In this document: positions 5,483 through 62,198 of the stretch, in pieces
Layout: every line of letters starts with the position of its first letter
Position numbering within the stretch: position 1 is the stretch's first letter
Virus record (IMG/VR): IMGVR_UViG_3300044640_001495
Coordinates: 1 to 64,000 of that record
Length of the DNA stretch: 64,000 nt
Strand: one strand, 5' to 3'
Position numbers and translations under genes: made by a program
Notes under the pieces: model-generated
What the model was told of the DNA's origin: nothing
What the model saw: only the letters and a program-made list of their open reading frames with translations
The model's database searches: none

Positions 5483-6055
5483 AACAAGTTCGTAGAGTTC
5501 ACTCCAATTCTTGACTACAGGGTAAGAACACTTGTGATGCATATTATGCCCGTGTTCAATAAGAACAGATTTCAAACCTAAAGCATGTCCGACATCAGCA
5601 TTGGCAGGTTTATCTTCAATCCACCACAGGCCGCTGTCTTTGTATGGAGCCAATGCAGAATCTTTGTCTGCGCCTGTATCTAGGCAAATAACTGTTTCGA
5701 TAGCATTGCCAAACAACTTACGTAGATTCATTTCACGCAGTTTCTGTGCGTTCTTGTCCAGACTTAGGCTTGTGATAACACGGAATTCGTAGCCGTGTTC
5801 TTCATGTAGTCGTTTAACATAGTGAGCAGCATCTCTAAGTGCAGGAAGGAATCCAATTGCTGCAGATTCGTTAAAAGTCTTTACAACCTTTTTGGCATCT
5901 TTTTCTTCTAGTTCGTTATAGTGGTGATGTAGATAATAGCTTTTCTTGTTATCCGCTGTTAGTGTGTATCCACGTTCTTGCATCCAAACTGAGAACGCCC
6001 ATTCCCAATCTAACAAGACGCCATCGGCATCGGTGAGTATAAGTTTGTTTTTCAT
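5456..6055 (-). CDS. HAD-family 5'(3')-deoxyribonucleotidase-like phosphatase
   Basis: LTDADGVLLDW (DxDG), ITS and IEDKPAN motifs. Confidence 0.8.
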   Translation of the reverse strand: MKNKLILTDADGVLLDWEWAFSVWMQERGYTLTADNKKSYYLHHHYNELEEKDAKKVVKTFNESAAIGFLPALRDAAHYVKRLHEEHGYEFRVITSLSLDKNAQKLREMNLRKLFGNAIETVICLDTGADKDSALAPYKDSGLWWIEDKPANADVGHALGLKSVLIEHGHNMHHKCSYPVVKNWSELYELVLTPVSTAV

Positions 6056-6060
6056 ACTGT

Positions 6061-6089
6061 ATTATAACATACTTTAACCCTTGTGTCAA
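6061..6089 (-). promoter_or_regulatory. sigma70-type promoter
   Basis: TTGACA-N17-TATAAT on the minus strand just upstream of the HAD gene. Confidence 0.85.
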
Positions 6090-24411: not shown

Positions 24412-24656
24412 AAAAAATAACACTAGACCAATTGGTAGAAATTGCCGCAGAAGTAGAAGCTGGCGATCCCGCAGATTGGGGTAAACTTGCTGTTGGGCAA
24501 GAACAGGCATTTAGAATGATTGGCACAAGTATACTTGACATGTTTGACAAAGAAGTGTATACTGATGATGACAAACTGATAATGTTGGCAACTATTACTA
24601 AACTAACAGTTGAAAACATGTTGCTTAATCTAAAGATTATGGATAAAAGTTCATAA
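24408..24656 (+). CDS. hypothetical protein
   Basis: 82 aa ORF with ATGA overlap. Confidence 0.6.
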
Positions 24657-24703: not shown

Positions 24704-24907
24704 ATGGTAACAGGAAAAGTAAAATGGTTTAACGACGCCAAAGGTTTTGGATTCATTACTCCGGACGATGGTGGCGCAGACTTATTTGCTCACTTTTCAC
24801 AGATTAATTCGAGTGGCTTCAAGAGCCTACAAGAAGGACAAAGTGTAAGGTTTGAAGTGACTCAGGGTCAAAAAGGCGAGCAGGCTAGTAATATTCAAGC
24901 TGCCTAA
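24704..24907 (+). CDS. cspA: cold-shock protein
   Basis: [17 protein letters not shown] (RNP1) and LFAHFS (RNP2). Confidence 0.95.
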
Positions 24908-24910
24908 AAA

Positions 24911-25270
24911 ATTGTTGTAGAAGTCTTAAAGTAAGGCATTCTGGACGCGGGTTCGACTCCCGCCAGGTCCACCATAAAGGAGATTAGTATGGATAACGAA
25001 TATAGTGCTCTAGTTGGCTTTATTGTTGTTATCGTAGTATTTGCTCTAGTCCTTTTATGATGGGCCTGCCATGGTTTCGACAGGGTGAGATAGGATAAAG
25101 ATCAACACGTGGGGTCACGTAAAATACAAAAAACGTAAATGCAAACGCAGATACATTCGACTTCAGCGCAATGAGCTTCACTGGAAACACTGTTTCCGGC
25201 AAAAGCAAAGTTGCTCTAGCTGCCTAAAAAACAGCGGTCCGAGGTAGTTATACCTTGTCATCCAAAATAG
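24911..25270 (+). ncRNA. ssrA: circularly permuted (two-piece) tmRNA
   Basis: Acceptor piece ...GGACGCGGGTTCGACTCCCGCCAGGTCCACCA ends at 24974. The coding piece starts GGGCCTG at 25062 and pairs with CAGGTCC, including G3-U70. Tag ORF 25141-25227 encodes ANADTFDFSAMSFTGNTVSGKSKVALAA*. Outer boundaries are approximate. Confidence 0.9.
24989..25060 (+). CDS. 23-aa hydrophobic peptide encoded in the tmRNA intervening segment
   Basis: AAGGAG RBS directly after CCA; MDNEYSALVGFIVVIVVFALVLL*; stop ends 1 nt before the tmRNA 5' end. Confidence 0.55.
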   Translation: MDNEYSALVGFIVVIVVFALVLL

Positions 25271-25271
25271 C

Positions 25272-25298
25272 AGAACCCGCTTCGGCGGGTTTCTTTTT
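25272..25298 (+). terminator. intrinsic terminator after tmRNA
   Basis: agaacccgc-TTCG-gcgggtttcttttt. Confidence 0.88.
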
Positions 25299-25328
25299 GG
25301 CAATATTTCCAAATTATCGTCTCGAAGT

Positions 25329-55826: not shown

Positions 55827-56047
55827 TGTATAAAACTATGTATAAAGAAGTCGAAGTAGATGTTGATTTAAGTGACTTTGACACCGATGATCTAATTGAA
55901 GAATTGGAGTCACGTGGCTCAGGTGTTATGAACTACGGTGATGGGACAGATGTACTACGAGCGATCTATGAAAAACGTAGACTAGGACAAGATTATCAAA
56001 CAGAATTAGATCAACTTATTTGGTTAGGATTGGGCAAAGTTGTATGA
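55826..56047 (+). CDS. hypothetical protein
   Basis: 73 aa acidic ORF. Confidence 0.55.
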   Translation: MYKTMYKEVEVDVDLSDFDTDDLIEELESRGSGVMNYGDGTDVLRAIYEKRRLGQDYQTELDQLIWLGLGKVV

Positions 56048-56424
56048 CTGAAATACAGCTGATTATACTGCTTTTGGCTCTCTTTGGCATTAAACATTTT
56101 ATATGTGATTTTCTACTGCAATTTCCCTATATGCTAGAACAAAAGGGCATCTACGGTGCAGAGGGTGGGGTACATCACGCCACTATGCACGGAGTTTGGA
56201 CTTGGGTTATTTTGTTGCCATTTTTAGGCACAATGGCAGTTTTTGCCGCACTATTTGACATGGTAGCACACTATCATATCGATTGGGCAAAACAACAGTT
56301 GAATCAAGGGCTGACTCCTGCAGATCGCACATTTTGGGTTTGGTTTGGGCTAGATCAAGCTCTCCATTATTTGACCTATATCGTTATTATTGGCTGGGCT
56401 GTAGGTGTATTCTCTATTAACTGA
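56044..56424 (+). CDS. DUF3307-family membrane protein
   Basis: KHFICDF.LQ...M...KG, H...H, HY.ID..K and GLDQ.LH. Confidence 0.8.
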   Translation: MTEIQLIILLLALFGIKHFICDFLLQFPYMLEQKGIYGAEGGVHHATMHGVWTWVILLPFLGTMAVFAALFDMVAHYHIDWAKQQLNQGLTPADRTFWVWFGLDQALHYLTYIVIIGWAVGVFSIN

Positions 56425-56471
56425 TAGTATAATTACTAGATATGATAAGTAATAGTACGCAAGGGGCAGCA

Positions 56472-57029
56472 GTGAAAAAAATAGACGAATTTAACGCCAG
56501 CGATCGTATTGGCATAAAATTACTGGAAAATTCGGTTCATTTTCTAACCGGCGAAATTACCGAAGAAAACGTCAACGAATGCATCAAATGGTTGGTCTAC
56601 GAAAATCTAGAAGCTAAAGAAAAAGTTCTTACTCTGTATGTTAATTCATCGGGCGGAGATCTTTACCAGGCATTTGCTCTCATTGACATCATGCGAAACA
56701 GCAAACACATTGTTCGCACTGTGGGTATAGGCAGTGTTATGAGTGCTGCATTTTTGATTTTTACCAGTGGCGATCATGGAGAAAGACACATTGCAGCCAA
56801 CACAGGTATTATGTGTCATCAATTCTCCGGCGGAACTGACGCCAAGTTTCACGACCTAAAAGCAGAAATGAAAGAGAATGAGATGTTAAACAAGAAGATG
56901 GTTGACATACTTAAGAACGCAACCGGATTAGCCCCATCAAGAATTAAAACAAAACTGTTGCCAGCCAGTGATGTTTATCTAACAGCACAAGAAGCCATCG
57001 AACTCGGCATTGCCGATCATTTAATATAA
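56472..57029 (+). CDS. clpP: ClpP-like ATP-dependent protease proteolytic subunit
   Basis: LYVNSSGG, GSVMSAAF (Ser), MCHQF (His) and DVYLTAQEAIELGIAD. Confidence 0.88.
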   Translation: MKKIDEFNASDRIGIKLLENSVHFLTGEITEENVNECIKWLVYENLEAKEKVLTLYVNSSGGDLYQAFALIDIMRNSKHIVRTVGIGSVMSAAFLIFTSGDHGERHIAANTGIMCHQFSGGTDAKFHDLKAEMKENEMLNKKMVDILKNATGLAPSRIKTKLLPASDVYLTAQEAIELGIADHLI

Positions 57030-57039
57030 AAGGTCAAAT

Positions 57040-57294
57040 ATGGAAGTCGTAAGCATTAACAGCAGACGCAAAGAACAGATTCAAGAAGAAGAGCAAAAAA
57101 AAGCCATGCTGGAGGTGGTTGACTTTATCAGGCAGTCAATTGACCAAGGTGTCATAAAAGAATTCGTTGCCTGCTCAATTGACAATAGTGGAGAGTGCCA
57201 GATACATGTGGCTGCAATGGACCTGCCCGGCAGCGTGGGTCTTTTTGAAATTGGCAAACACATTCTAATCAGCGGCGAATCAACATTTGATTAA
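57040..57294 (+). CDS. hypothetical protein
   Basis: 84 aa ORF. Confidence 0.6.
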   Translation: MEVVSINSRRKEQIQEEEQKKAMLEVVDFIRQSIDQGVIKEFVACSIDNSGECQIHVAAMDLPGSVGLFEIGKHILISGESTFD

Positions 57295-57332
57295 ATGTGG
57301 CAAAAAAGCCACATAATGTGACCGTATTTCTA

Positions 57333-57447
57333 TTGACACATAAATAAAAAGACAATATAATACATACAGTTGGTTAGGAAGGCGTCAAAATTTATTTTGC
57401 CTAAAATGCAAATAAAGGTTGACACAGAGACTAAATAACTGTATAAT
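57333..57447 (+). promoter_or_regulatory. tandem sigma70-type promoters upstream of the tRNA region
   Basis: TTGACA-N17-TATAAT at 57333-57361 and again at 57419-57447. Confidence 0.85.
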
Positions 57448-57504
57448 TAAAACATAGACAGCAAGGTGTTGTCTATAAAAGGAAAAGAAAGGAAAAGAAA
57501 GCAA

Positions 57505-57648
57505 ATGAAACTCAGATCATCTTTTAGTCATTTTAATTCGATACCTAAGCAGGTAGGCGTGATGGCCTCTTGCTGGTTAGCGATTAATAGTCTATCATAT
57601 GATCGTACACCAGAGCTAGAGCCGGGGTCCGTGGAGATGTTAGTGTAA
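57505..57648 (+). CDS. putative leader peptide (47 aa)
   Basis: ATG after a purine-rich tract; overlaps the antiterminator strand of a terminator. Confidence 0.4.
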   Translation: MKLRSSFSHFNSIPKQVGVMASCWLAINSLSYDRTPELEPGSVEMLV

Positions 57649-57676
57649 ACTCAAAATACACTTAAACTTCAAAGGA

Positions 57677-57704
57677 CCCTAGGATTAAAACCCTGGGGTT
57701 TTTT
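57677..57704 (+). terminator. intrinsic terminator with competing antiterminator
   Basis: ccctagg-attaaaac-cctgggg-tttttt; ggggtcc (57624-57630) can pair with ggaccct (57674-57680). Confidence 0.7.
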
Positions 57705-57721
57705 GTTTTCCGCAAGGAAAA

Positions 57722-57883
57722 ATGGAATTAGAGATAGATAAAAACTACGAAGTTGAACATAGCGAGAATTTTGTGCTAACGGCAGAACAGACAAGGAAAC
57801 TTATCTGGCAAAAGTTTGCAAGAAATAACATGCTAGATCAACTAGAAGAGCGAGAAAGGCAGTTTCAAAAACTTGCTGAATAA
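57722..57883 (+). CDS. small hypothetical protein (53 aa; not in ORF track)
   Basis: AAGGA RBS; MELEIDKNYEVEHSENF... Confidence 0.5.
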   Translation: MELEIDKNYEVEHSENFVLTAEQTRKLIWQKFARNNMLDQLEERERQFQKLAE

Positions 57884-58124
57884 CGCAAAAGTGCAATAGA
57901 TTACGGGAACGAGGCCCGGGCAGCGCACTCAAAACATGCTGCGAACGGGCGGACTAGTGGATGGCTTATCCTTGTGTGGATAAAAAAATACTAGTTATAT
58001 TAAAGCGTACTCCAAAACTAGAATGTTTAGGGGACAAGGCCACGAGCCGAGTACGTTTTAATATACACTCTTCATTCACCTTTGAACGGTGTCTAAAAGC
58101 ATAGCGGAGAGTGTAAACAATTTT

Positions 58125-58213
58125 GGACGAGTGCGCTGAATTGGTTGAAGGCAACGGACTGTAAATCCGCCACATAAGAAACATTGTAGGTTCGACTCCT
58201 ACCTCGTCCACCA
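58125..58213 (+). tRNA. tRNA-Tyr(GTA)
   Basis: Acceptor ggacgag/ctcgtcc, loop CT-GTA-AA, long variable arm, CCA. Confidence 0.9.
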
Positions 58214-58222
58214 AACGAATGG

Positions 58223-58251
58223 TTGACTTTTTTTTGGATTGGTGTTATACT
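58223..58251 (+). promoter_or_regulatory. sigma70-type promoter
   Basis: TTGACT-N17-TATACT. Confidence 0.75.
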
Positions 58252-58281
58252 ATTAATACTGTGAACTTAAAAGGAAATCAA

Positions 58282-58476
58282 ATGCAATCGTATCGTGTTT
58301 ATGTTGAAGTGGGTTCGTATGCAGGTGAAGGTACCAGCGGTGCTTTTCAAACTGAGAGCCTTCGACAATTTGAAACTGTAGTAAATGCCCAGACATCCGG
58401 AGATGCTGTGCGTATAGCAGAAGCCCAATATGGTGGCCAAGAACGGTGCCGTGTCACGTTCCGCGGCGTTGCTTAA
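58282..58476 (+). CDS. small hypothetical protein within the tRNA array
   Basis: AAGGA RBS; own promoter; 64 aa. Confidence 0.6.
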   Translation: MQSYRVYVEVGSYAGEGTSGAFQTESLRQFETVVNAQTSGDAVRIAEAQYGGQERCRVTFRGVA

Positions 58477-58484
58477 CAATTTTA

Positions 58485-58559
58485 GGTCTGTTCGTATAGA
58501 GGTTATTACTGCGGATTGTCTATCCGCTTACGGGGGTTCGATTCCCCCACAGACCGCCA
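58485..58559 (+). tRNA. tRNA-Asp(GTC)
   Basis: gcgga-TT GTC TA-tccgc; T-loop TTCGATT; CCA. Confidence 0.92.
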
Positions 58560-58566
58560 AGTTTAT

Positions 58567-58643
58567 TCCTCGGTAGCACAGTTGGTAGTTGCGCGGCACT
58601 GTTAATGCCGATGTCGGAAGTTCGAGCCTTCCCCGGGGAGCCA
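58567..58643 (+). tRNA. tRNA-Asn(GTT)
   Basis: cggca-CT GTT AA-tgccg; CCA. Confidence 0.92.
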
Positions 58644-58648
58644 ATAAT

Positions 58649-58724
58649 GTATCCTTAGCTCAATTGGCAGAGCGCTGGTCTCCAAAACCAGAGGTTCGCG
58701 GTTCGAGGCCGTGAGGGTACGCCA
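58649..58724 (+). tRNA. tRNA-Trp(CCA)
   Basis: ctggt-CT CCA AA-accag; CCA. Confidence 0.92.
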
Positions 58725-58732
58725 AGTTTTAT

Positions 58733-58807
58733 GGACCGTTCGTCTATCGGTTAGGACACTAGGTTTTCATCCTGGTAAGAGGGGTTCGACTCCCCTACGG
58801 TCTTCCA
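58733..58807 (+). tRNA. tRNA-Glu(TTC)
   Basis: ctagg-TT TTC AT-cctgg; CCA. Confidence 0.92.
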
Positions 58808-58814
58808 AATTTAT

Positions 58815-58892
58815 GTGGCGGTGGCAGAGAGGCCCATTGCAACGGATTGCAAATCCGTAAAATCGTGAGTTCAAATCTCACCCGCCACTCCA
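58815..58892 (+). tRNA. tRNA-Cys(GCA)
   Basis: acgga-TT GCA AA-tccgt; U73; CCA. Confidence 0.9.
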
Positions 58893-58942
58893 AACATGGC
58901 TCCACTCGTTCGACATAGTCGATGCTGTGGAGTTTTTCTTTT

Positions 58943-59023
58943 GCCCCGGTAGACAAATTGGCAAAGTCGTCTCTCTCAAAAAGAGAAATTTAAATGCGGG
59001 TTCAACTCCCGCCCGGGGTACCA
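58943..59023 (+). tRNA. tRNA-Leu(CAA)
   Basis: tctct-CT CAA AA-agaga; small variable arm; CCA. Confidence 0.88.
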
Positions 59024-59028
59024 ATCAT

Positions 59029-59118
59029 GGAAGTATGGCTGAGCATGGCTTAAGGCAGCAGTCTTGAAAACTGAAGGCTCGAAAGGGTCCGTGGGTTCGA
59101 ATCCTACTACTTCCGCCA
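59029..59118 (+). tRNA. tRNA-Ser(TGA)
   Basis: cagt-CT TGA AA-actg; long variable arm; G73; CCA. Confidence 0.9.
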
Positions 59119-59240
59119 ACTATGGACGAATCATTTGAGCAGTGTTAGATGCACACGGGTTACCTTTCCTAACCGCCAAGTGGCGTACCCCTGCCGAATG
59201 ACCTGGGCGTGGCAGTGATAATGATTCGTCCGCCTAATAC

Positions 59241-59315
59241 AGCCTATTAGCTCAGTGGTAGAGCACCGTCTTGATAAGGCGGGGGTCCTTGGATCGTTCC
59301 CAAGATAGGCTACCA
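59241..59315 (+). tRNA. tRNA-Ile(GAT) with non-canonical T-loop ATCGTTC
   Basis: ccgtc-TT GAT AA-ggcgg; acceptor agcctat/ataggct; CCA. Confidence 0.88.
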
Positions 59316-59337
59316 ATTTTTTAAAAGGAGATCTGTC

Positions 59338-59382
59338 ATGACTAGTGACAAGAGTGATAAGATAACGGGGGTGAAACTTTAA
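59338..59382 (+). CDS. 14-aa mini-ORF overlapping the 5' end of tRNA-Lys
   Basis: AAGGAG RBS; MTSDKSDKITGVKL*. Confidence 0.35.
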   Translation: MTSDKSDKITGVKL

Positions 59383-59440
59383 GGTGAAGTAACTGGCTTT
59401 TAACCAGTAAAACTCGGATCGTTCCCGAGCACCCCTACCA
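59367..59440 (+). tRNA. tRNA-Lys(TTT) with non-canonical T-loop ATCGTTC
   Basis: actgg-CT TTT AA-ccagt; CCA. Confidence 0.85.
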
Positions 59441-59521
59441 TATAAAAACACATTAGGCCTGGTCATAGACCATCGCGGGTATAGTGCCTTCCGTGCCGCG
59501 GACTTGAGTGTGTTTTTATAT

Positions 59522-59597
59522 GGTAATATAGCATAGTGGCTAATGCAGTTGCTTCATACGCAGCCTATCGTTGGTTCGAGTCCAACTATTACCACCA
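59522..59597 (+). tRNA. tRNA with CAT anticodon (elongator Met or lysidine-Ile2)
   Basis: gttgc-TT CAT AC-gcagc; paired G1-C72, so not initiator-like; CCA. Confidence 0.88.
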
Positions 59598-59603
59598 AGT
59601 TGT

Positions 59604-59677
59604 TGGGGGTTAGTTAAATGGTATAACCGCGGATTTTGATTCCGCTATTAAAGGTTCGATTCCTTTACCCTCTGCCA
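59604..59677 (+). tRNA. tRNA-Gln(TTG)
   Basis: gcgga-TT TTG AT-tccgc; U1-U72 mismatch; CCA. Confidence 0.88.
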
Positions 59678-59685
59678 AAAAATAA

Positions 59686-59760
59686 CGGTCCTTAGTTCAA
59701 TGGATAGAATGCTTGGCTTCGAACCAAGCGGTGTGGGTTCGATTCCTGCAGGACCGGCCA
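59686..59760 (+). tRNA. tRNA-Arg(TCG)
   Basis: cttgg-CT TCG AA-ccaag; CCA. Confidence 0.9.
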
Positions 59761-59761
59761 A

Positions 59762-60436
59762 CTAGATAATAGTAGATAGTTCAGCAGGAGTTAACTTAGG
59801 TGGCTCTGGAAAAGGACGTGGATCAGAAAACCCAACTGTTGTTGGTCCGTTGTTTACCGTTTCTCTTACTCGAGAGTCATTGGGTTGGCCAACAGATAGA
59901 AACACAATGGGCCATTCATTTTCTGCAAGACCTAAAATCTTGTGAGCTTGGTCTTCGAAAAAGCATGATGTAAAGGCAGTACGATATCCTAGAGATTCTG
60001 CTTGTATCATAGAAAAACTAGCAGCAATCATTGTATCTTTTTCAGAACGTGTTCGAACAGTATATTGTGTTTTAGGATCAGCAGATCTAGAAGATACATT
60101 TATTCCTTGTTCACGTACTGTAGTACCATTAGAAACAAGACCTAGGTCAAAGTTGTCTAAGATAGGAACTCCTATCCATGCTAACAGTAAAGGTGATTGG
60201 GCTGTTAGTAAATGTTTACGAATTGGCATGTTAATGAAACTGTCTAAGAACAGTTTATTTTTTAATTCAAGAGCTTTGTGGCTTTGAGTTAATGCAATAA
60301 CACGCCAAGGATATGCACGTTGCTTACTAGGGGCTGAACAACCAGCTGTTAGTATTGAGTCAATATGCTCTTGAGGTATAGCGTCATTAGTAAATGCTCG
60401 CTGTGTTCGTCGATTTAAAAAGATGTCTAACATCAA
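59762..60436 (-). CDS. nitroreductase-family flavoprotein inserted antisense in the tRNA array
   Basis: NRRTQRAF, I..IL.AG..APS...AYPW, MIQAESLGYRTAF and FLSVG. Confidence 0.8.
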   Translation of the reverse strand: MMLDIFLNRRTQRAFTNDAIPQEHIDSILTAGCSAPSKQRAYPWRVIALTQSHKALELKNKLFLDSFINMPIRKHLLTAQSPLLLAWIGVPILDNFDLGLVSNGTTVREQGINVSSRSADPKTQYTVRTRSEKDTMIAASFSMIQAESLGYRTAFTSCFFEDQAHKILGLAENEWPIVFLSVGQPNDSRVRETVNNGPTTVGFSDPRPFPEPPKLTPAELSTII

Positions 60437-60447
60437 GTATTTATTTT

Positions 60448-60521
60448 ATCGCTGTAGTGAAAAGATATCACAAGACCCTGCGAAGGTCTAAGTCCACGTT
60501 CAACTCGTGGCAGCGATACCA
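60448..60521 (+). tRNA. tRNA-Arg(GCG)
   Basis: agacc-CT GCG AA-ggtct; acceptor atcgctg/cagcgat; D-loop lacks GG; CCA. Confidence 0.82.
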
Positions 60522-60591
60522 AAATTAGTAAAATTCTATTACGTAAGATCCAAGCAAAGTGCAAGGATTGGCCATAACAAGGAGATATAAA

Positions 60592-60798
60592 ATGAAACCT
60601 ATTACTTTTAAAAATCGTTTAAACAACGAACGAGTAGTCTGTGAAGATTCTCGTCAAACTCAGAATATAGATGGCGTTGAGTATCTCTTGGTTCATCGCC
60701 CTGACAATCAACGACAGTTCCTTATGCGTAAGGATGTGTTAGAAAAAGTTAATGGTGTTGGTAGTGTAGTGGCTGCACGGCTGTCTGTGAAACAGTAA
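60592..60798 (+). CDS. small hypothetical protein whose C-terminus is read through tRNA-His
   Basis: AAGGAG RBS; MKPITFKNRLNNERVVCED...; stop lies inside the tRNA. Confidence 0.6.
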   Translation: MKPITFKNRLNNERVVCEDSRQTQNIDGVEYLLVHRPDNQRQFLMRKDVLEKVNGVGSVVAARLSVKQ

Positions 60799-60827
60799 GA
60801 GAGAGTTCGATTCTCCCCTTCACCCCA
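60754..60827 (+). tRNA. tRNA-His(GTG), atypical (two U-U pairs in acceptor stem)
   Basis: gctgt-CT GTG AA-acagt; G-1/C73; CCA. Confidence 0.72.
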
Positions 60828-60829
60828 AT

Positions 60830-60905
60830 GCCGCTTTAGCTGATGTGGTCATAGCACCGGTTTGAAGAACCGAGGAACTAGGTTCGATCCCTAGAGGCGG
60901 CACCA
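60830..60905 (+). tRNA. tRNA-Phe(GAA)
   Basis: cggt-TT GAA GA-accg; CCA. Confidence 0.88.
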
Positions 60906-60911
60906 AGATAT

Positions 60912-60995
60912 GTGAGCGTGGTGGAATGGTATACACAGCAGACTTAAAATCTGCCGCCTTCGGGATTGAGGGTTCAAGTCCCTCCGCTCATACCA
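60912..60995 (+). tRNA. tRNA-Leu(TAA)
   Basis: gcaga-CT TAA AA-tctgc; variable arm; CCA. Confidence 0.92.
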
Positions 60996-61002
60996 AATAA
61001 AT

Positions 61003-61094
61003 GCCAGCGAGACTTGGTAGTCAGAGAGGTTTTATAAACCTTTTAGCGCCAGATTAGCGTTCTTGAGAGGGTTCGATTCCCTCCGCTGGTACCA
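61003..61094 (+). tRNA. tRNA-Ile(TAT) with long variable arm
   Basis: gaggt-TT TAT AA-acctt; variable arm agcgc-cagatta-gcgtt; acceptor gccagcg/cgctggt; A73; CCA. Confidence 0.8.
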
Positions 61095-61124
61095 AATTAT
61101 TTTATAAGTTTTTTCATAAAGTTG

Positions 61125-61153
61125 TTGACACACAGGTGATTAGACTATATAAT
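61125..61153 (+). promoter_or_regulatory. sigma70-type promoter inside the tRNA array
   Basis: TTGACA-N17-TATAAT. Confidence 0.85.
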
Positions 61154-61175
61154 GTATATTATTAGTTAGAAATTT

Positions 61176-61259
61176 GCGCAAGTGGTGGAATGGTATACAC
61201 GCTGGTCTTAGAAGCCAGTGCCGAAAGGATTGAGAGTTCGAGTCTCTCCTTGCGCACCA
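61176..61259 (+). tRNA. tRNA-Leu(TAG)
   Basis: ctggt-CT TAG AA-gccag; variable arm; CCA. Confidence 0.92.
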
Positions 61260-61266
61260 TAGTTTA

Positions 61267-61342
61267 GGGTTCTTAGCTCAGTTGGTAGAGCGTCTGCCTT
61301 ACACGCAGAATGTCGTCAGTTCGACCCTGGCAGAACCCACCA
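61267..61342 (+). tRNA. tRNA-Val(TAC)
   Basis: tctgc-CT TAC AC-gcaga; CCA. Confidence 0.93.
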
Positions 61343-61350
61343 AGCAACAC

Positions 61351-61438
61351 GGAGCATTGGCCGACCGGTTAAGGCAACAGATTGCTAATCTGTCATTCAG
61401 TAATGGGTGAGTAGGTTCGATTCCTACATGCTCCGCCA
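61351..61438 (+). tRNA. tRNA-Ser(GCT)
   Basis: acaga-TT GCT AA-tctgt; long variable arm; CCA. Confidence 0.92.
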
Positions 61439-61441
61439 TAA

Positions 61442-61641
61442 CGTTCCGAGTGTCTTCGGATAGTGTGACCCACACGATGAGAAGTAGTGTGACAACTACG
61501 GGTGGTAGTCTTTAAACCCAAAGGCCGCTAGCAATGCGAGAACGGTCCCTGTCGGGAAGCGGGTGGAAGGTACGAGTGAGGGGTATGATAGCGTCATATC
61601 TTTCTGTACTATAATTACCGCCGGGGGATGCAGAGCAACCA
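61442..61641 (+). ncRNA. candidate ~200-nt structured RNA of unknown family in the tRNA array
   Basis: At least seven short stems, GC-richer than flanks, no ORF of 60 aa or more, ends in ACCA. Confidence 0.55.
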
Positions 61642-61662
61642 GATTTTAATAAAGGAAATACA

Positions 61663-61875
61663 ATGAAACCAGGTCCAAATTATAGAATGAGTGCTTTGAC
61701 TAAAGCAAGTCTAGCAATGAGTAGAGTTCTAGATCCGCACAAACGAGGTGAATGGAAACGTGCTATGATTGATGCTGAACTATGTGCTGCCGTGGTGCCA
61801 AAACGTGAACCACGCAAACAGGGAGGTGGTAATTTTACCACTCATGCATCCGGAACAGTATCCAGTGGAGGCTAA
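61663..61875 (+). CDS. small basic hypothetical protein
   Basis: AAGGA RBS; 70 aa. Confidence 0.6.
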   Translation: MKPGPNYRMSALTKASLAMSRVLDPHKRGEWKRAMIDAELCAAVVPKREPRKQGGGNFTTHASGTVSSGG

Positions 61876-61876
61876 C

Positions 61877-62026
61877 ATGCAAGTTCGAGTTAAAGAAAAT
61901 GCAGATCAGGTTGGTAAGTGTGGTTGCGGTCGTTCGCCTACTGGTAAGTGCATCGGTTGGCACGGACTAACCGAACAAGCATTTAAAGAAAAACTTCAAG
62001 AGTATAAACTCAACGAAGGTAAGTAA
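61877..62026 (+). CDS. CDGSH-like Fe-S / zinc-finger small protein
   Basis: GGAGG RBS; CGCGRSPTGKCIGWHG. Confidence 0.65.
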   Translation: MQVRVKENADQVGKCGCGRSPTGKCIGWHGLTEQAFKEKLQEYKLNEGK

Positions 62027-62032
62027 AATATT

Positions 62033-62107
62033 GGGCTGTTGGTATAGATGGGAACACAGTAGCTTTGCAAGCTTCAATCCCCGGTTCGATCCCGGGACGG
62101 TCCACCA
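62033..62107 (+). tRNA. tRNA-Ala(TGC)
   Basis: G3-U70 in gggctgt/acggtcc; TT TGC AA loop; CCA. Confidence 0.88.
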
Positions 62108-62124
62108 AGTTTTAAGTAAGTATT

Positions 62125-62198
62125 GCCCCTTTAGTATAATGGTATTACACCTGTTTTGTAATCAGGTTACGGCAGTTCGATTCTGTCAAGGGGCACCA
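62125..62198 (+). tRNA. tRNA-Thr(TGT)
   Basis: cctg(t)-TT TGT AA-(t)cagg; CCA. Confidence 0.9.

Follow-up and report, generated by a model that had tools for sequence, protein, structure and literature searches.

The stretch analysed here (the window) comprises 64,000 nucleotides, positions 1 to 64,000 of the IMG/VR record IMGVR_UViG_3300044640_001495, from a 353-kb lake-water jumbo phage. Upstream of the tRNA gene array in this window lies a module, present in a single copy in the genome, in which tandem promoters are followed by a short open reading frame (ORF), a predicted three-helix antiterminator, an overlapping intrinsic terminator and, further downstream, an optional second ORF, a conserved structured RNA (block A) and the tRNAs (Table 1). 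To avoid confusion, the two promoters are referred to below as promoters P1 and P2 and the antiterminator stems as helices P1, P2 and P3.

Table 1. Features of the module at the head of the tRNA array (positions in the window; all on the + strand)
Position	Feature	Details and supporting observations
57333..57361	Promoter P1, TTGACA-17 nt-TATAAT	12/12 consensus match; conserved in relatives, which carry 1-3 tandem promoters of at least 10/12 upstream of the leader
57419..57447	Promoter P2, TTGACA-17 nt-TATAAT	12/12 consensus match; conserved; some relatives carry a third promoter module
57454..57476	5'-terminal stem-loop (10 bp) of the promoter P2 transcript	Predicted in both the MFE and the centroid; arms change together in the alignment of relatives; role as an mRNA-stabilising 5' hairpin inferred
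57505..57648	Leader ORF, 47 codons plus TAA	Purine-rich Shine-Dalgarno-like stretch at 57481-57500; indels upstream of the peptide motif are in frame in relatives
57589..57615	Codons for the conserved peptide core S-L-S-Y-D-R-T-P-E	Ends 7-15 nt before the antiterminator 5' arm
57621..57683	Predicted antiterminator	Helix P1 57624-30 with 57674-80 (GGGGTCC with GGACCCT; 6 Watson-Crick pairs and one G-U), plus 57621-22 with 57682-83; helix P2 57632-36 with 57667-71; helix P3 57642-47 with 57657-62; stop codon 57646-48 in the 5' arm of helix P3; MFE of the full leader transcript
57674..57704	Predicted intrinsic terminator	Stem 57674-83 with 57692-701 (core 57676-83 with 57692-99); loop 57684-91; T6 57699-57704; recovered in folds of the sequence and of the alignment
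57722..57883	53-codon ORF with a Shine-Dalgarno sequence, optional member of the operon	Starts 17 nt after the T run; start region conserved in many relatives; in others absent, with the structured RNA directly after the terminator
57888..58007	Block A, conserved structured non-coding RNA of about 117 nt	Hairpins 57903-19 (loop AACGAGG) and 57920-42, plus 57953-95 enclosing 57966-83; possible pseudoknot 57891-94 with 57925-28; single copy in the genome
57996..58124	17-bp hairpin (57996-58012 with 58049-58065) and conserved leader block B (58050-58124) directly before tRNA-Tyr	Block B 85-94% identical in relatives; processing role inferred
58125..62198	tRNA array, tRNA-Tyr first, 23 ARAGORN calls in all	Further promoters at 58223-58251 (10/12) and 61125-61153 (12/12)

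An initial annotation, made from the sequence alone, had described two consensus promoters, the 47-codon ORF, a 7-bp pairing and an overlapping terminator with a T6 run, the two hairpins being mutually exclusive, and these observations are confirmed, since every one of the features lies where it was placed and the segment 57674-57683 is shared by both hairpins. The T run begins one base earlier than a loose reading would give, and the leader, which had been called Ser-rich with 7 of 47 residues, contains 8 serines, although this Ser-richness is not conserved in relatives. Chance is not a plausible source of this arrangement. A 12/12 promoter is expected about 0.02 times in 64 kb on both strands, whereas the window has 7 on the + strand, with promoters P1 and P2 being the only pair of these within 100 nt. 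Further, the transcript from promoter P2 to the terminator folds better than all 200 shuffled sequences (z = -3.5).

The module was recovered in about 165 distinct relatives, assembled as a first set and a second set, the latter found by the RNA pattern alone. The leader ORF is open in all 76 sequences of the first set and in 82 of 83 modules (73 of 74 distinct peptides) of the second set, at a length of 41-53 codons. The stop codon falls 14-33 nt (mostly 20-24) after the start of the GGGTCC arm of helix P1 and 20-35 nt before GGACCC. The arm (GGGTYC) is read in frame 0 in 31 sequences, in frame 1 in 44 and in frame 2 in 1, yet it is invariant, and hence the constraint is on the RNA and not on the protein.

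The leader peptide itself has a conserved core (W...SYDRTPE), with invariant G18, W24, D33, R34, P36 and E37 in the peptide alignment of the first set, although part of this invariance comes from the search pattern. The motif nevertheless recurs in most sequences found by the RNA pattern alone. The conserved block spans about residues 10-37, roughly the length of one exit tunnel, and ends just upstream of helix P1, whereas the N-terminal ~9 and C-terminal ~10 residues vary freely. No run of codons for a single amino acid is seen in the window's leader or in those of relatives, consistent with the initial annotation, which had found no clear run of control codons. These features hint at nascent-peptide pausing, and a refinement of the attenuator reading, rather than an alternative architecture, is that the core stalls the ribosome inside the exit tunnel just before helix P1, with or without a small molecule or factor, such that the release or persistence of this specific stall, and not general translation speed, sets the choice of fold. 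In this view, a ribosome with its P site at codon 35 or earlier would leave helix P1 free and one that moves on would melt it. However, some clades with the same RNA switch have an unrelated peptide, and no match to SecM, TnaC, MifM or RAPP-type arrest motifs is recognised, so that this version, with stalling being purely an inference, is at best a tentative possibility.

The antiterminator shows compensatory change by several measures. An anchor-based count of the closing pair of helix P1 gave AU 36, GC 29, GU 6 and a mismatch in 1, and the second pair goes from C-G to U-G to U-A. Over 7 phylogenetically independent contrasts, the two sides change together in about 6 and never in opposite directions, although the sites are only about 55 nt apart and could travel together by recombination. 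Over the whole structure, two covariance-model alignments have 88% and 85.6% of cells paired, with 124 and 259 double-change cells against 40 and 91 in shuffles, and with 13 of 20 and 16 of 20 pairs carrying double changes, whereas slid-partner controls reach only 20-55% paired. These alignments are fitted to the antiterminator structure, which favors it, a bias that the anchor-based count does not share; RNAalifold on the plain MAFFT alignment returned only the terminator. The terminator has 99.7% of cells paired in 91 distinct relatives, with compensatory changes in 5 pairs and 50 double-change cells against 0.7 expected. Additionally, in five diverged relatives the helix P1 arm, the shared segment and the terminator 3' arm all have different sequences but keep both alternative pairings. 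Conservation of the antiterminator pairing had been set beforehand as a condition on which the attenuator reading could fail, and the reading passes it.

An alternative reading of the same data is an ordinary, very highly expressed early gene for a small effector protein of 45-49 residues with its own terminator, in which the extended hairpin over the 3' end of the ORF stabilises the mRNA or tunes its translation, and readthrough into the tRNA region is constitutive leakage. The conservation of the peptide core at the amino acid level, with synonymous codon changes, would also fit a small protein with a function of its own, tandem consensus promoters and a 5' hairpin suit a high-output gene, and many relatives have a separate promoter in front of the tRNAs. 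However, helix P1 necessarily competes with the terminator and both are kept by compensatory changes even where all three strands have changed, while a mere stabiliser need not overlap the terminator arm. Further, several clades keep the ORF, its length and its end point with an unrelated peptide sequence, and the C-terminal 10 residues are dictated by the RNA structure in two frames. AlphaFold2 predicts only a single helix at low confidence (pLDDT 62, pTM 0.27) and no compact fold, and searches found no Pfam or PHROG family. Only two clusters were found in a collection of 5.8 billion proteins, because gene callers rarely call the ORF. In this window, moreover, tRNA-Tyr has no promoter of its own. 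Thus, this reading appears unlikely.

In the absence of a ribosome, the antiterminator fold is predicted to be the more stable one (the MFE) in 66 of 72 relatives, on average 3.6 kcal/mol better than the state with the helix P1 5' arm masked. No consistent upstream partner of this arm was found, and a small hairpin at about 57560-57575 within the ORF, examined as a possible pause or anti-antiterminator hairpin, has only a weak, 3-bp consensus at -0.8 kcal/mol. Contigs of lake metatranscriptomes cover the leader of close relatives, and one runs 197 nt past the terminator, although contigs cannot show transcript ends and DNA carry-over is not excluded. It could be proposed that the terminated ~250-nt leader transcript is itself the product, i.e., a dual-function small RNA, with or without its peptide, acting in trans, the terminator simply making its 3' end, as in the attenuator-derived sRNAs rnTrpL/peTrpL of Sinorhizobium (PMC6614838, PMC7968998). 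The strong promoters, 5' hairpin and terminator would make a discrete, probably abundant and stable RNA. However, this explains neither why the antiterminator is more stable than the terminator nor the fixed position of the stop codon inside it, and, without any identified target, it remains improbable as the sole account, although it is compatible with attenuation rather than excluding it.

Searches of Rfam with the window and nine relatives returned nothing on the attenuator or on block A, with no family below E = 0.5 on 57250-58500. Weak matches to Qrr (E = 1.7, minus strand), SpF11 and, in one relative, His_leader (23.5 bits against a gathering score of 49) are treated as chance or as generic resemblance to a hairpin plus terminator. 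This bears on a further possibility, namely a ribosome-independent switch in which a protein, a tRNA (T-box-like) or a metabolite binds and stabilises or disrupts helices P1-P3, with the ORF being incidental. The covarying helices P2 and P3 could be a binding platform, and the operon encodes tRNAs, the ligands of T-box switches. However, no T-box, riboswitch or leader family of Rfam matches the element, its loops and bulges are not conserved in sequence, and the ORF is kept open with a fixed end point in more than 150 distinct variants, which is hard to explain if it is incidental. This reading is therefore considered very unlikely.

Downstream of the terminator, the first conserved product is not a tRNA but the predicted structured RNA block A. 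On an alignment made without regard to structure, 88.9% of its cells are paired, with 201 double-change cells against 63 +/- 6, and it is found downstream of the attenuator in nearly all relatives. An ORF at 57961-58104 inside block A was rejected as a gene, as relatives have out-of-frame indels and early stops there. A tRNA lies within about 1 kb downstream in 127 of 133 relatives, at 170-741 nt in 73 of 74 and 54 of 59 relatives of the two sets. In about 60-65% of those, no promoter of at least 10/12 lies between the terminator and the first tRNA, and in this window there is no promoter-like site on the + strand between 57447 and 58223. However, about 35-40% of relatives (24 of 73 and 21 of 54) do have a strong promoter in this interval, and given the two promoters inside the array of this window, much of the array could be transcribed without passing the attenuator, which is thus not always the only gate.

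With respect to distribution, near and distant DNA searches of 50,697 deposited phage genomes matched only tRNA-Tyr, with no cultured close relative, and the best protein match of the ribonucleotide reductase is about 60% identical, to Xanthomonas, Ralstonia and Stenotrophomonas jumbo phages. A pattern scan of prokaryote genomes gave 50 matching stretches, of which only one carries the element by the covariance model, a 6.2-kb contig binned with a Polynucleobacter MAG, while two others give weak sub-threshold matches.

Taken together, these observations are best explained by a ribosome-mediated transcription attenuator at the 5' end of the phage's non-coding RNA/tRNA operon, to which we assign a probability of about 0.6. 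In this model, host sigma-70 RNA polymerase would start at the tandem promoters and make an RNA with a translated leader whose last roughly 8 codons and stop codon lie inside the antiterminator. If no ribosome is there when the polymerase transcribes 57674-57704, the antiterminator, which forms first and is the more stable fold, would sequester the 5' arm of the terminator, and the polymerase would read on into the 53-codon ORF, block A and the tRNAs. If the lead ribosome follows closely and translates to the stop codon, it would unwind helices P1-P3 and occupy the space between the arms of helix P1, allowing the terminator to form and transcription to end after the T run. The default state would therefore be 'on', and the module would report how well the first ribosome keeps pace with the polymerase, with good translation giving few tRNA transcripts and slow or stalled translation giving more. 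The parts, their conservation and covariation, the geometry, the relative predicted stabilities and the linkage to tRNA arrays are established by the analysis, whereas translation of the ORF, termination at the T run, the selection of the fold by ribosome position (which rests on known ribosome footprints), the dependence of readthrough on translation and the physiological signal are inferred from sequence alone. The conserved core ending just upstream of helix P1 suggests that a programmed pause of the nascent chain tunes the decision. The interpretation offered in the initial annotation, that array transcription may be switched on when ribosomes stall in the leader, for example after host tRNA depletion or anticodon-nuclease attack, is hence only partly supported: the architecture and the direction of the switch fit the geometry and energetics, while the translation-dependence and any specific trigger find no support beyond inference.

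A bolder reading, which is possible but doubtful on present evidence, is that a widespread group of freshwater jumbo phages carries a translation-status sensor, in which an arrest-type leader peptide and a default-on antiterminator couple transcription of the tRNA array and block A to how well ribosomes keep up, raising the tRNA supply exactly when host tRNAs are depleted, cleaved or mismatched to phage codon use. Block A would then be a new RNA class acting in the same circuit, for example as a processive antitermination element for the 4-kb untranslated array. Phage tRNA arrays are usually discussed in terms of why they exist (codon usage, replacement of degraded host tRNAs and escape from anticodon nucleases), whereas how a phage decides when to make them is essentially unknown. 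Here, a conserved, sequence-defined putative switch, whose logic can be read from the sequence, lies at the head of the array in more than 150 phage genomes. If it works as inferred, it would be the first leader-peptide attenuator governing a tRNA operon and a feedback loop from translation capacity to tRNA supply during infection, with an unusual design in being default-on, in its long conserved leader and in having the stop codon inside the antiterminator. It also points to an abundant, undescribed structured RNA that travels with it in nearly all relatives. Full-text literature searches found no description of an attenuator or leader peptide at a phage tRNA cluster, though this does not prove absence.

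Among known systems, the phage T4 tRNA cluster includes the stable RNAs 'species 1 and 2', small structured RNAs of unknown function co-transcribed with phage tRNAs, as block A would be; no leader-peptide attenuator is known at the head of that cluster. The rRNA operon leaders, with tandem P1-P2 promoters followed by boxA antitermination, likewise place strong promoters at the head of a long untranslated RNA operon, and block A, like the phage HK022 put RNA, could in principle act on the polymerase as a promoter-proximal structured RNA, although no boxA-like sequence was recognised here and block A has no Rfam match. The regulatory arrest peptides TnaC, SecM, MifM and VemP resemble the leader in having a conserved amino acid sequence over about one exit-tunnel length immediately upstream of an RNA structure whose fate depends on ribosome position, with W, D and P as putative key residues, as in TnaC. 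However, the described cases control Rho-dependent termination or downstream translation rather than an intrinsic terminator/antiterminator pair, and arrest is only inferred here. The pheST attenuator, with its pheM leader, applies attenuation to a component of the translation apparatus by sensing tRNA charging through leader translation, but pheM has 14 codons with a Phe run and controls a synthetase, whereas here tRNA genes themselves lie downstream and no single amino acid is singled out. The attenuators of amino acid operons (E. coli trpL, hisL, leuL, thrL and pheL) share the promoter-proximal short ORF, the intrinsic terminator and the mutually exclusive antiterminator, and in them a ribosome that reaches the leader stop codon prevents the antiterminator while one stalled upstream allows it and gives readthrough. 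In comparison, the present leader is three times longer, has a conserved peptide core and lacks a run of regulatory codons, its stop codon lies inside rather than before the antiterminator, and the operon belongs to a phage and encodes RNAs rather than biosynthetic enzymes. As no conserved 1:2 (anti-antiterminator or pause) hairpin was found, the absence of translation should give readthrough rather than super-attenuation. Finally, the pyrBI leader, with 44 codons, is similar in its long ORF and in an outcome set by how closely the ribosome follows the polymerase, but there the ribosome itself covers the terminator and tight coupling gives readthrough, whereas in the phage module the ORF stops before the terminator arm and tight coupling should give termination.

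The 353-kb virus record that the window opens is 98% complete by CheckV, and its genes, as seen in the window, run almost entirely on the + strand. A scan for sigma-70-type promoters matching at least 11 of the 12 consensus positions finds 14 on the + strand and 3 on the - strand, so the phage evidently uses the host polymerase. Searches of deposited phage genomes returned no close relative, and the ribonucleotide reductase is about 60% identical to those of Xanthomonas and Ralstonia jumbo phages, whereas the same DNA is present in many lake-water metagenomes. The phage also encodes a tmRNA, which matches both the permuted and the betaproteobacterial tmRNA models of Rfam, has a predicted tag peptide ending in ...ALAA and lies downstream of an 11/12 promoter; together with 23 tRNAs this shows a heavy investment in translation. 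The match to the betaproteobacterial model would fit a host suggested by a 6.2-kb contig binned into a Polynucleobacter sp. MAG (JBBAKF010000113.1, our locus L228), which carries both the attenuator (123 bits) and the structured RNA termed block A below (95 bits), at 5813-6062, although this contig may equally be a mis-binned phage fragment.

Inspection of the sequence shows that the initial annotation was correct in its observation: the tandem consensus promoters, the 47-codon ORF, the complementary GGGGTCC and GGACCCT, and the overlapping terminator with its T6 run are all located where it had placed them (see the table). The leader transcript folds better than all 200 shuffled versions (z = -3.5), and in the minimum free energy (MFE) structure of the whole transcript it is the antiterminator that forms and not the terminator. 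The scan finds no promoter-like site on the + strand between promoter P2 and position 58223. Immediately upstream, a hairpin conserved in relatives directly follows an 84-codon ORF; it is not followed by a T run on the + strand, and upstream transcription may hence run into the region of the two promoters. On the minus strand, a stretch overlapping promoter P1 and this upstream hairpin weakly resembles the Vibrio Qrr sRNA model (18.7 bits, E = 1.7, including a CCUAACCAACUG stretch), which is taken as a chance match.

Coordinates of the features of the window discussed in the text
Feature	Position	Strand	Remarks
tmRNA promoter	24535-24563		11/12
tmRNA	24880-25318	+	
ClpP-like gene	56442-57029		two genes upstream of the element
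84-codon ORF	57040-57294		
Hairpin after the 84-codon ORF	57296-57315	+	7-bp stem, A6 loop
Qrr-like stretch	57299-57403	-	weak resemblance
Promoter P1	57333-57361		perfect TTGACA-17-TATAAT
Promoter P2	57419-57447		perfect TTGACA-17-TATAAT
Stem-loop beginning the P2 transcript	57454-57476		10 bp
Leader ORF	57505-57648		47 residues
Leader stop codon	57646-48		
Antiterminator helix P1	57624-30 with 57674-80		GGGGTCC with GGACCCT
Segment shared by the two hairpins	57674-83		
Terminator stem	57676-83 with 57692-99		extendable by A-U and G-U pairs to 57674/57701
T6 run	57699-57704		
53-codon ORF	57722-57883		good Shine-Dalgarno sequence
Block A	57888-58007	+	structured RNA of about 117 nt
Hairpin before block B	57996-58012 with 58049-58065	+	17 bp, nearly perfect
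Block B	58050-58124	+	conserved nested hairpin leader abutting tRNA-Tyr
tRNA-Tyr	begins at 58125		first tRNA of the array
Further promoter	58223		10/12 with an extended -10
Long tRNA-Ile (tat) call	61003-61094	+	92 nt
Further promoter	61125		12/12
End of tRNA array	62198		

Relatives were collected in three independent ways: through the ClpP-like gene upstream of the element (80 loci), a route that is unbiased with respect to the element; through an 18-nt pattern in the leader (104 stretches); and through a pattern that specifies only the RNA switch, namely the arms of helix P1 and the terminator (more than 120 stretches). In the ClpP-derived set the intergenic module is often better conserved in DNA than ClpP is in protein, with one example showing 89% nucleotide identity where ClpP is 66% identical. 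The ClpP relatives that lack the module also lack a tRNA array at this place, and the module is single-copy in the genome of the window. Many relatives have three tandem consensus promoters instead of two, and in four of the related loci (L041, L023, L012 and L006) the extra promoter comes with its own downstream hairpin; promoter copy number at this spot is evolutionarily fluid.

The leader ORF is real and its end point matters. In every sequence of the first set the frame is open at 45-49 codons, a few having upstream in-frame ATGs; indels upstream of the conserved motif are multiples of three, and the stop is TAA in 75 of 76. In the set recovered through the RNA pattern alone, 82 of 83 modules, giving 73 of the 74 distinct peptides, have an ORF of 41-53 codons that ends inside the antiterminator, with the stop lying 14-27 nt after the start of GGGTCC and 24-34 nt before GGACCC. 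The peptide has a conserved core with invariant G18, W24, D33, R34, P36 and E37 (consensus ...FNTMPKQAG..AS.W..I...SLSYDRTPE), whereas the first ~9 and last ~10 residues vary. Part of this invariance is imposed by the first search pattern; however, most peptides of the pattern-independent set also carry W...(S/N)(N/Y/L)DR(T/L)PE, while a few clades have unrelated sequences of the same length. The C-terminal variability has a clear cause, in that the invariant hexamer GGGTYC is read in frame 0 in 31 sequences (Gly-Ser), in frame 1 in 44 (Arg-Val) and in frame 2 in one, and is therefore conserved as nucleic acid and not as codons. The peptide matches no Pfam or PHROG family and is almost absent from protein collections, and AlphaFold2 modeling on 72 sequences predicts only a low-confidence single helix (pLDDT 62, pTM 0.27).

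Analysis of base pairing indicates that the antiterminator is under selection. Counting was first done by fixed offsets from the two conserved hexamers, such that no structure-fitted alignment was involved. The closing pair 57624:57680 is A-U in 36 sequences, G-C in 29, G-U in 6 and mismatched in 1, and whenever 57680 is C, 57624 is G. Likewise, pair 57629:57675 goes from C-G through U-G (locus L110) to U-A (loci L015 and L006), although the first change turns Ser into Phe. In a tree built from the upstream 335 nt, leaving out the switch itself, there are 7 well-supported independent contrasts in the 3' base, and the 5' base follows in about 6 and never goes the other way (sign test p about 0.03), with the caveat that the two sites are 56 nt apart and could be exchanged together by recombination. 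A covariance model of helices P1-P3 was then used to realign both sets. In the first set 88% of cells are paired and 13 of 20 pairs show changes on both sides, with 124 such cells against 40 +/- 11 in shuffles; in the second, independent set of 91 distinct sequences 85.6% are paired and 16 of 20 pairs show such changes, with 259 cells against 91 +/- 12. With the partner slid by 1-3 columns, pairing drops to 20-55% in both sets. These alignments are fitted to the structure and lean towards it, unlike the anchor-based count. The most telling cases are the diverged relatives found through block A (loci L331, L333, L343, L348 and L351), in which the 5' arm of helix P1, the shared segment and the 3' arm of the terminator all differ in sequence from those of the window, yet the shared segment can still pair with either partner.

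The terminator is also under selection. It hardly varies in the first set, but in the second set 99.7% of cells are paired and five pairs show compensatory changes, e.g., 57680:57695 is C-G in 34, U-A in 31 and U-G in 24, amounting to 50 double-change cells against 0.7 +/- 0.8 expected. To compare the two states, the segment from helix P1 to the T run was folded for each relative: the antiterminator-containing fold is the MFE in 66 of 72 and is on average 3.6 kcal/mol better than the best fold with the 5' arm of helix P1 made unavailable, that fold being the terminator; for the window the values are -28.2 against -24.8 kcal/mol. The antiterminator is also transcribed first. A search for an upstream partner of the 5' arm found none that is conserved, and only a hairpin in mid-ORF with a weak 3-bp consensus was observed. 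The default state of the naked RNA should therefore be readthrough.

These observations lend partial support to the initial annotation's reading of the element as a ribosome-mediated attenuator that may be switched on by stalling in the leader: the parts, their conservation and covariation and the relative stabilities of the predicted folds come from the analysis itself, whereas the mechanism, including the dependence of readthrough on leader translation, is inferred from geometry. A ribosome is assumed here to protect about 12-15 nt on either side of its P/A sites, which is established knowledge. With the stop codon in the A site, it would then cover helices P2 and P3 and sit between the two arms of helix P1, and once codon 37 is passed its helicase must also open P1; however, it would not reach the terminator arm, which starts 26 nt further on. 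A ribosome that follows the polymerase closely should therefore abolish the antiterminator just when 57692-57704 is made, with termination as the result, whereas one that is absent, late, or held with its P site at or before about codon 35 would leave P1 intact and allow the polymerase to continue. The conserved peptide core ends 7-15 nt before GGGTYC, which is exactly the last position that a ribosome can hold without touching P1. This geometry, together with conservation over about one exit-tunnel length, is the argument for a programmed pause of the nascent chain, which remains a hypothesis. The signal sensed could in principle be general translation capacity, particular tRNAs, or a ligand acting through the nascent peptide. 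Every codon of the motif can be read by tRNAs found in these arrays, but as the arrays cover nearly all amino acids, this says little.

Downstream of the terminator, the window contains, in order, the 53-codon ORF, block A, the 17-bp hairpin, block B and tRNA-Tyr. Block A is strongly supported as a structured RNA on a structure-blind alignment of 37 sequences, in which 88.9% of cells are paired, with 201 double-change cells against 63 +/- 6, and each of four helices has 4-6 covarying pairs. It has three hairpin domains and a possible pseudoknot, and its invariant single-stranded stretches include AACGAGG, GCAC, AACGGGCGG and GGATG. It is single-copy in the genome, present behind the attenuator in nearly all relatives and found in more than 120 viral contigs; the model gave 97 matches over the 100 related loci searched, and wherever positions were compared it lies downstream of the attenuator, following within 11-14 nt where the 53-codon ORF is missing. 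No Rfam 15 family matches this previously undescribed RNA, which could be a stable RNA co-transcribed with the tRNAs or a cis-acting antitermination element. In one relative (locus L322, 1580-1710, - strand) the His operon leader model of Rfam gives a sub-threshold match (23.5 bits, gathering 49, E = 4.5) a few hundred nt upstream of block A, where the attenuator should lie, which reflects generic leader/terminator resemblance and not membership. Block B is 85-94% identical in relatives, and with the preceding hairpin it looks like a processing site for the polycistronic precursor. The unit conserved in evolution is therefore promoters, leader/switch, block A, then tRNAs.

A same-strand tRNA lies 170-741 nt behind the terminator in 73 of 74 and 54 of 59 relatives with enough sequence; the first tRNA is most often Tyr, but 13 other specificities also occur. 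In 49 of 73 and 33 of 54 of those, no promoter of at least 10/12 lies in between, while in the rest a strong promoter sits just before the first tRNA. The switch is thus the only visible gate in most genomes but not all. In this window the 53-codon ORF, block A and tRNA-Tyr certainly lie behind it, whereas later tRNAs also have two promoters of their own. Within the array, ARAGORN calls a long tRNA-Ile (tat) with the anticodon at an unusual position, where the tRNA model of Rfam does not reach its gathering score. The same 92-nt gene recurs in relatives, and in two relatives Rfam gives sub-threshold tRNA-Sec-like matches to long tRNA-like genes, which may or may not be the same gene; it may be an atypical long-arm tRNA.

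With respect to expression, six lake or freshwater metatranscriptome runs contain parts of the stretch, and four of these were compared with positions 56000-60000. Contigs of close relatives (90-99% identical) cover the leader, at 57542-57709, 57512-57689 and 57512-57615 in the metatranscriptome entries X15, X19 and X17, respectively. The X15 contig continues for 197 nt beyond the T run into a homolog of the 53-codon ORF. This is compatible with transcription of the leader and with some readthrough, although contigs cannot show transcript ends or strand, and DNA carry-over cannot be excluded.

In terms of known systems, the element would, on the inferred mechanism, work like a leader-peptide attenuator of the trp/his type. 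It displays four of the defining features of that family, namely the ORF, the terminator, a competing antiterminator and informative placement of the stop codon, but lacks a control-codon run. No report of such an element at a phage tRNA cluster was found in the literature searched. Its long leader recalls pyrBI, but the logic is the opposite; its conserved peptide recalls arrest peptides of the TnaC or SecM type, but it shows no match to the SecM, TnaC, MifM or RAPP-type motifs with which it was compared; and its target class, the translation apparatus, recalls the pheST attenuator. While its general type is thus already known, the new aspects are the target, i.e., a phage tRNA/ncRNA operon, the inferred default-on design and the conserved leader peptide.
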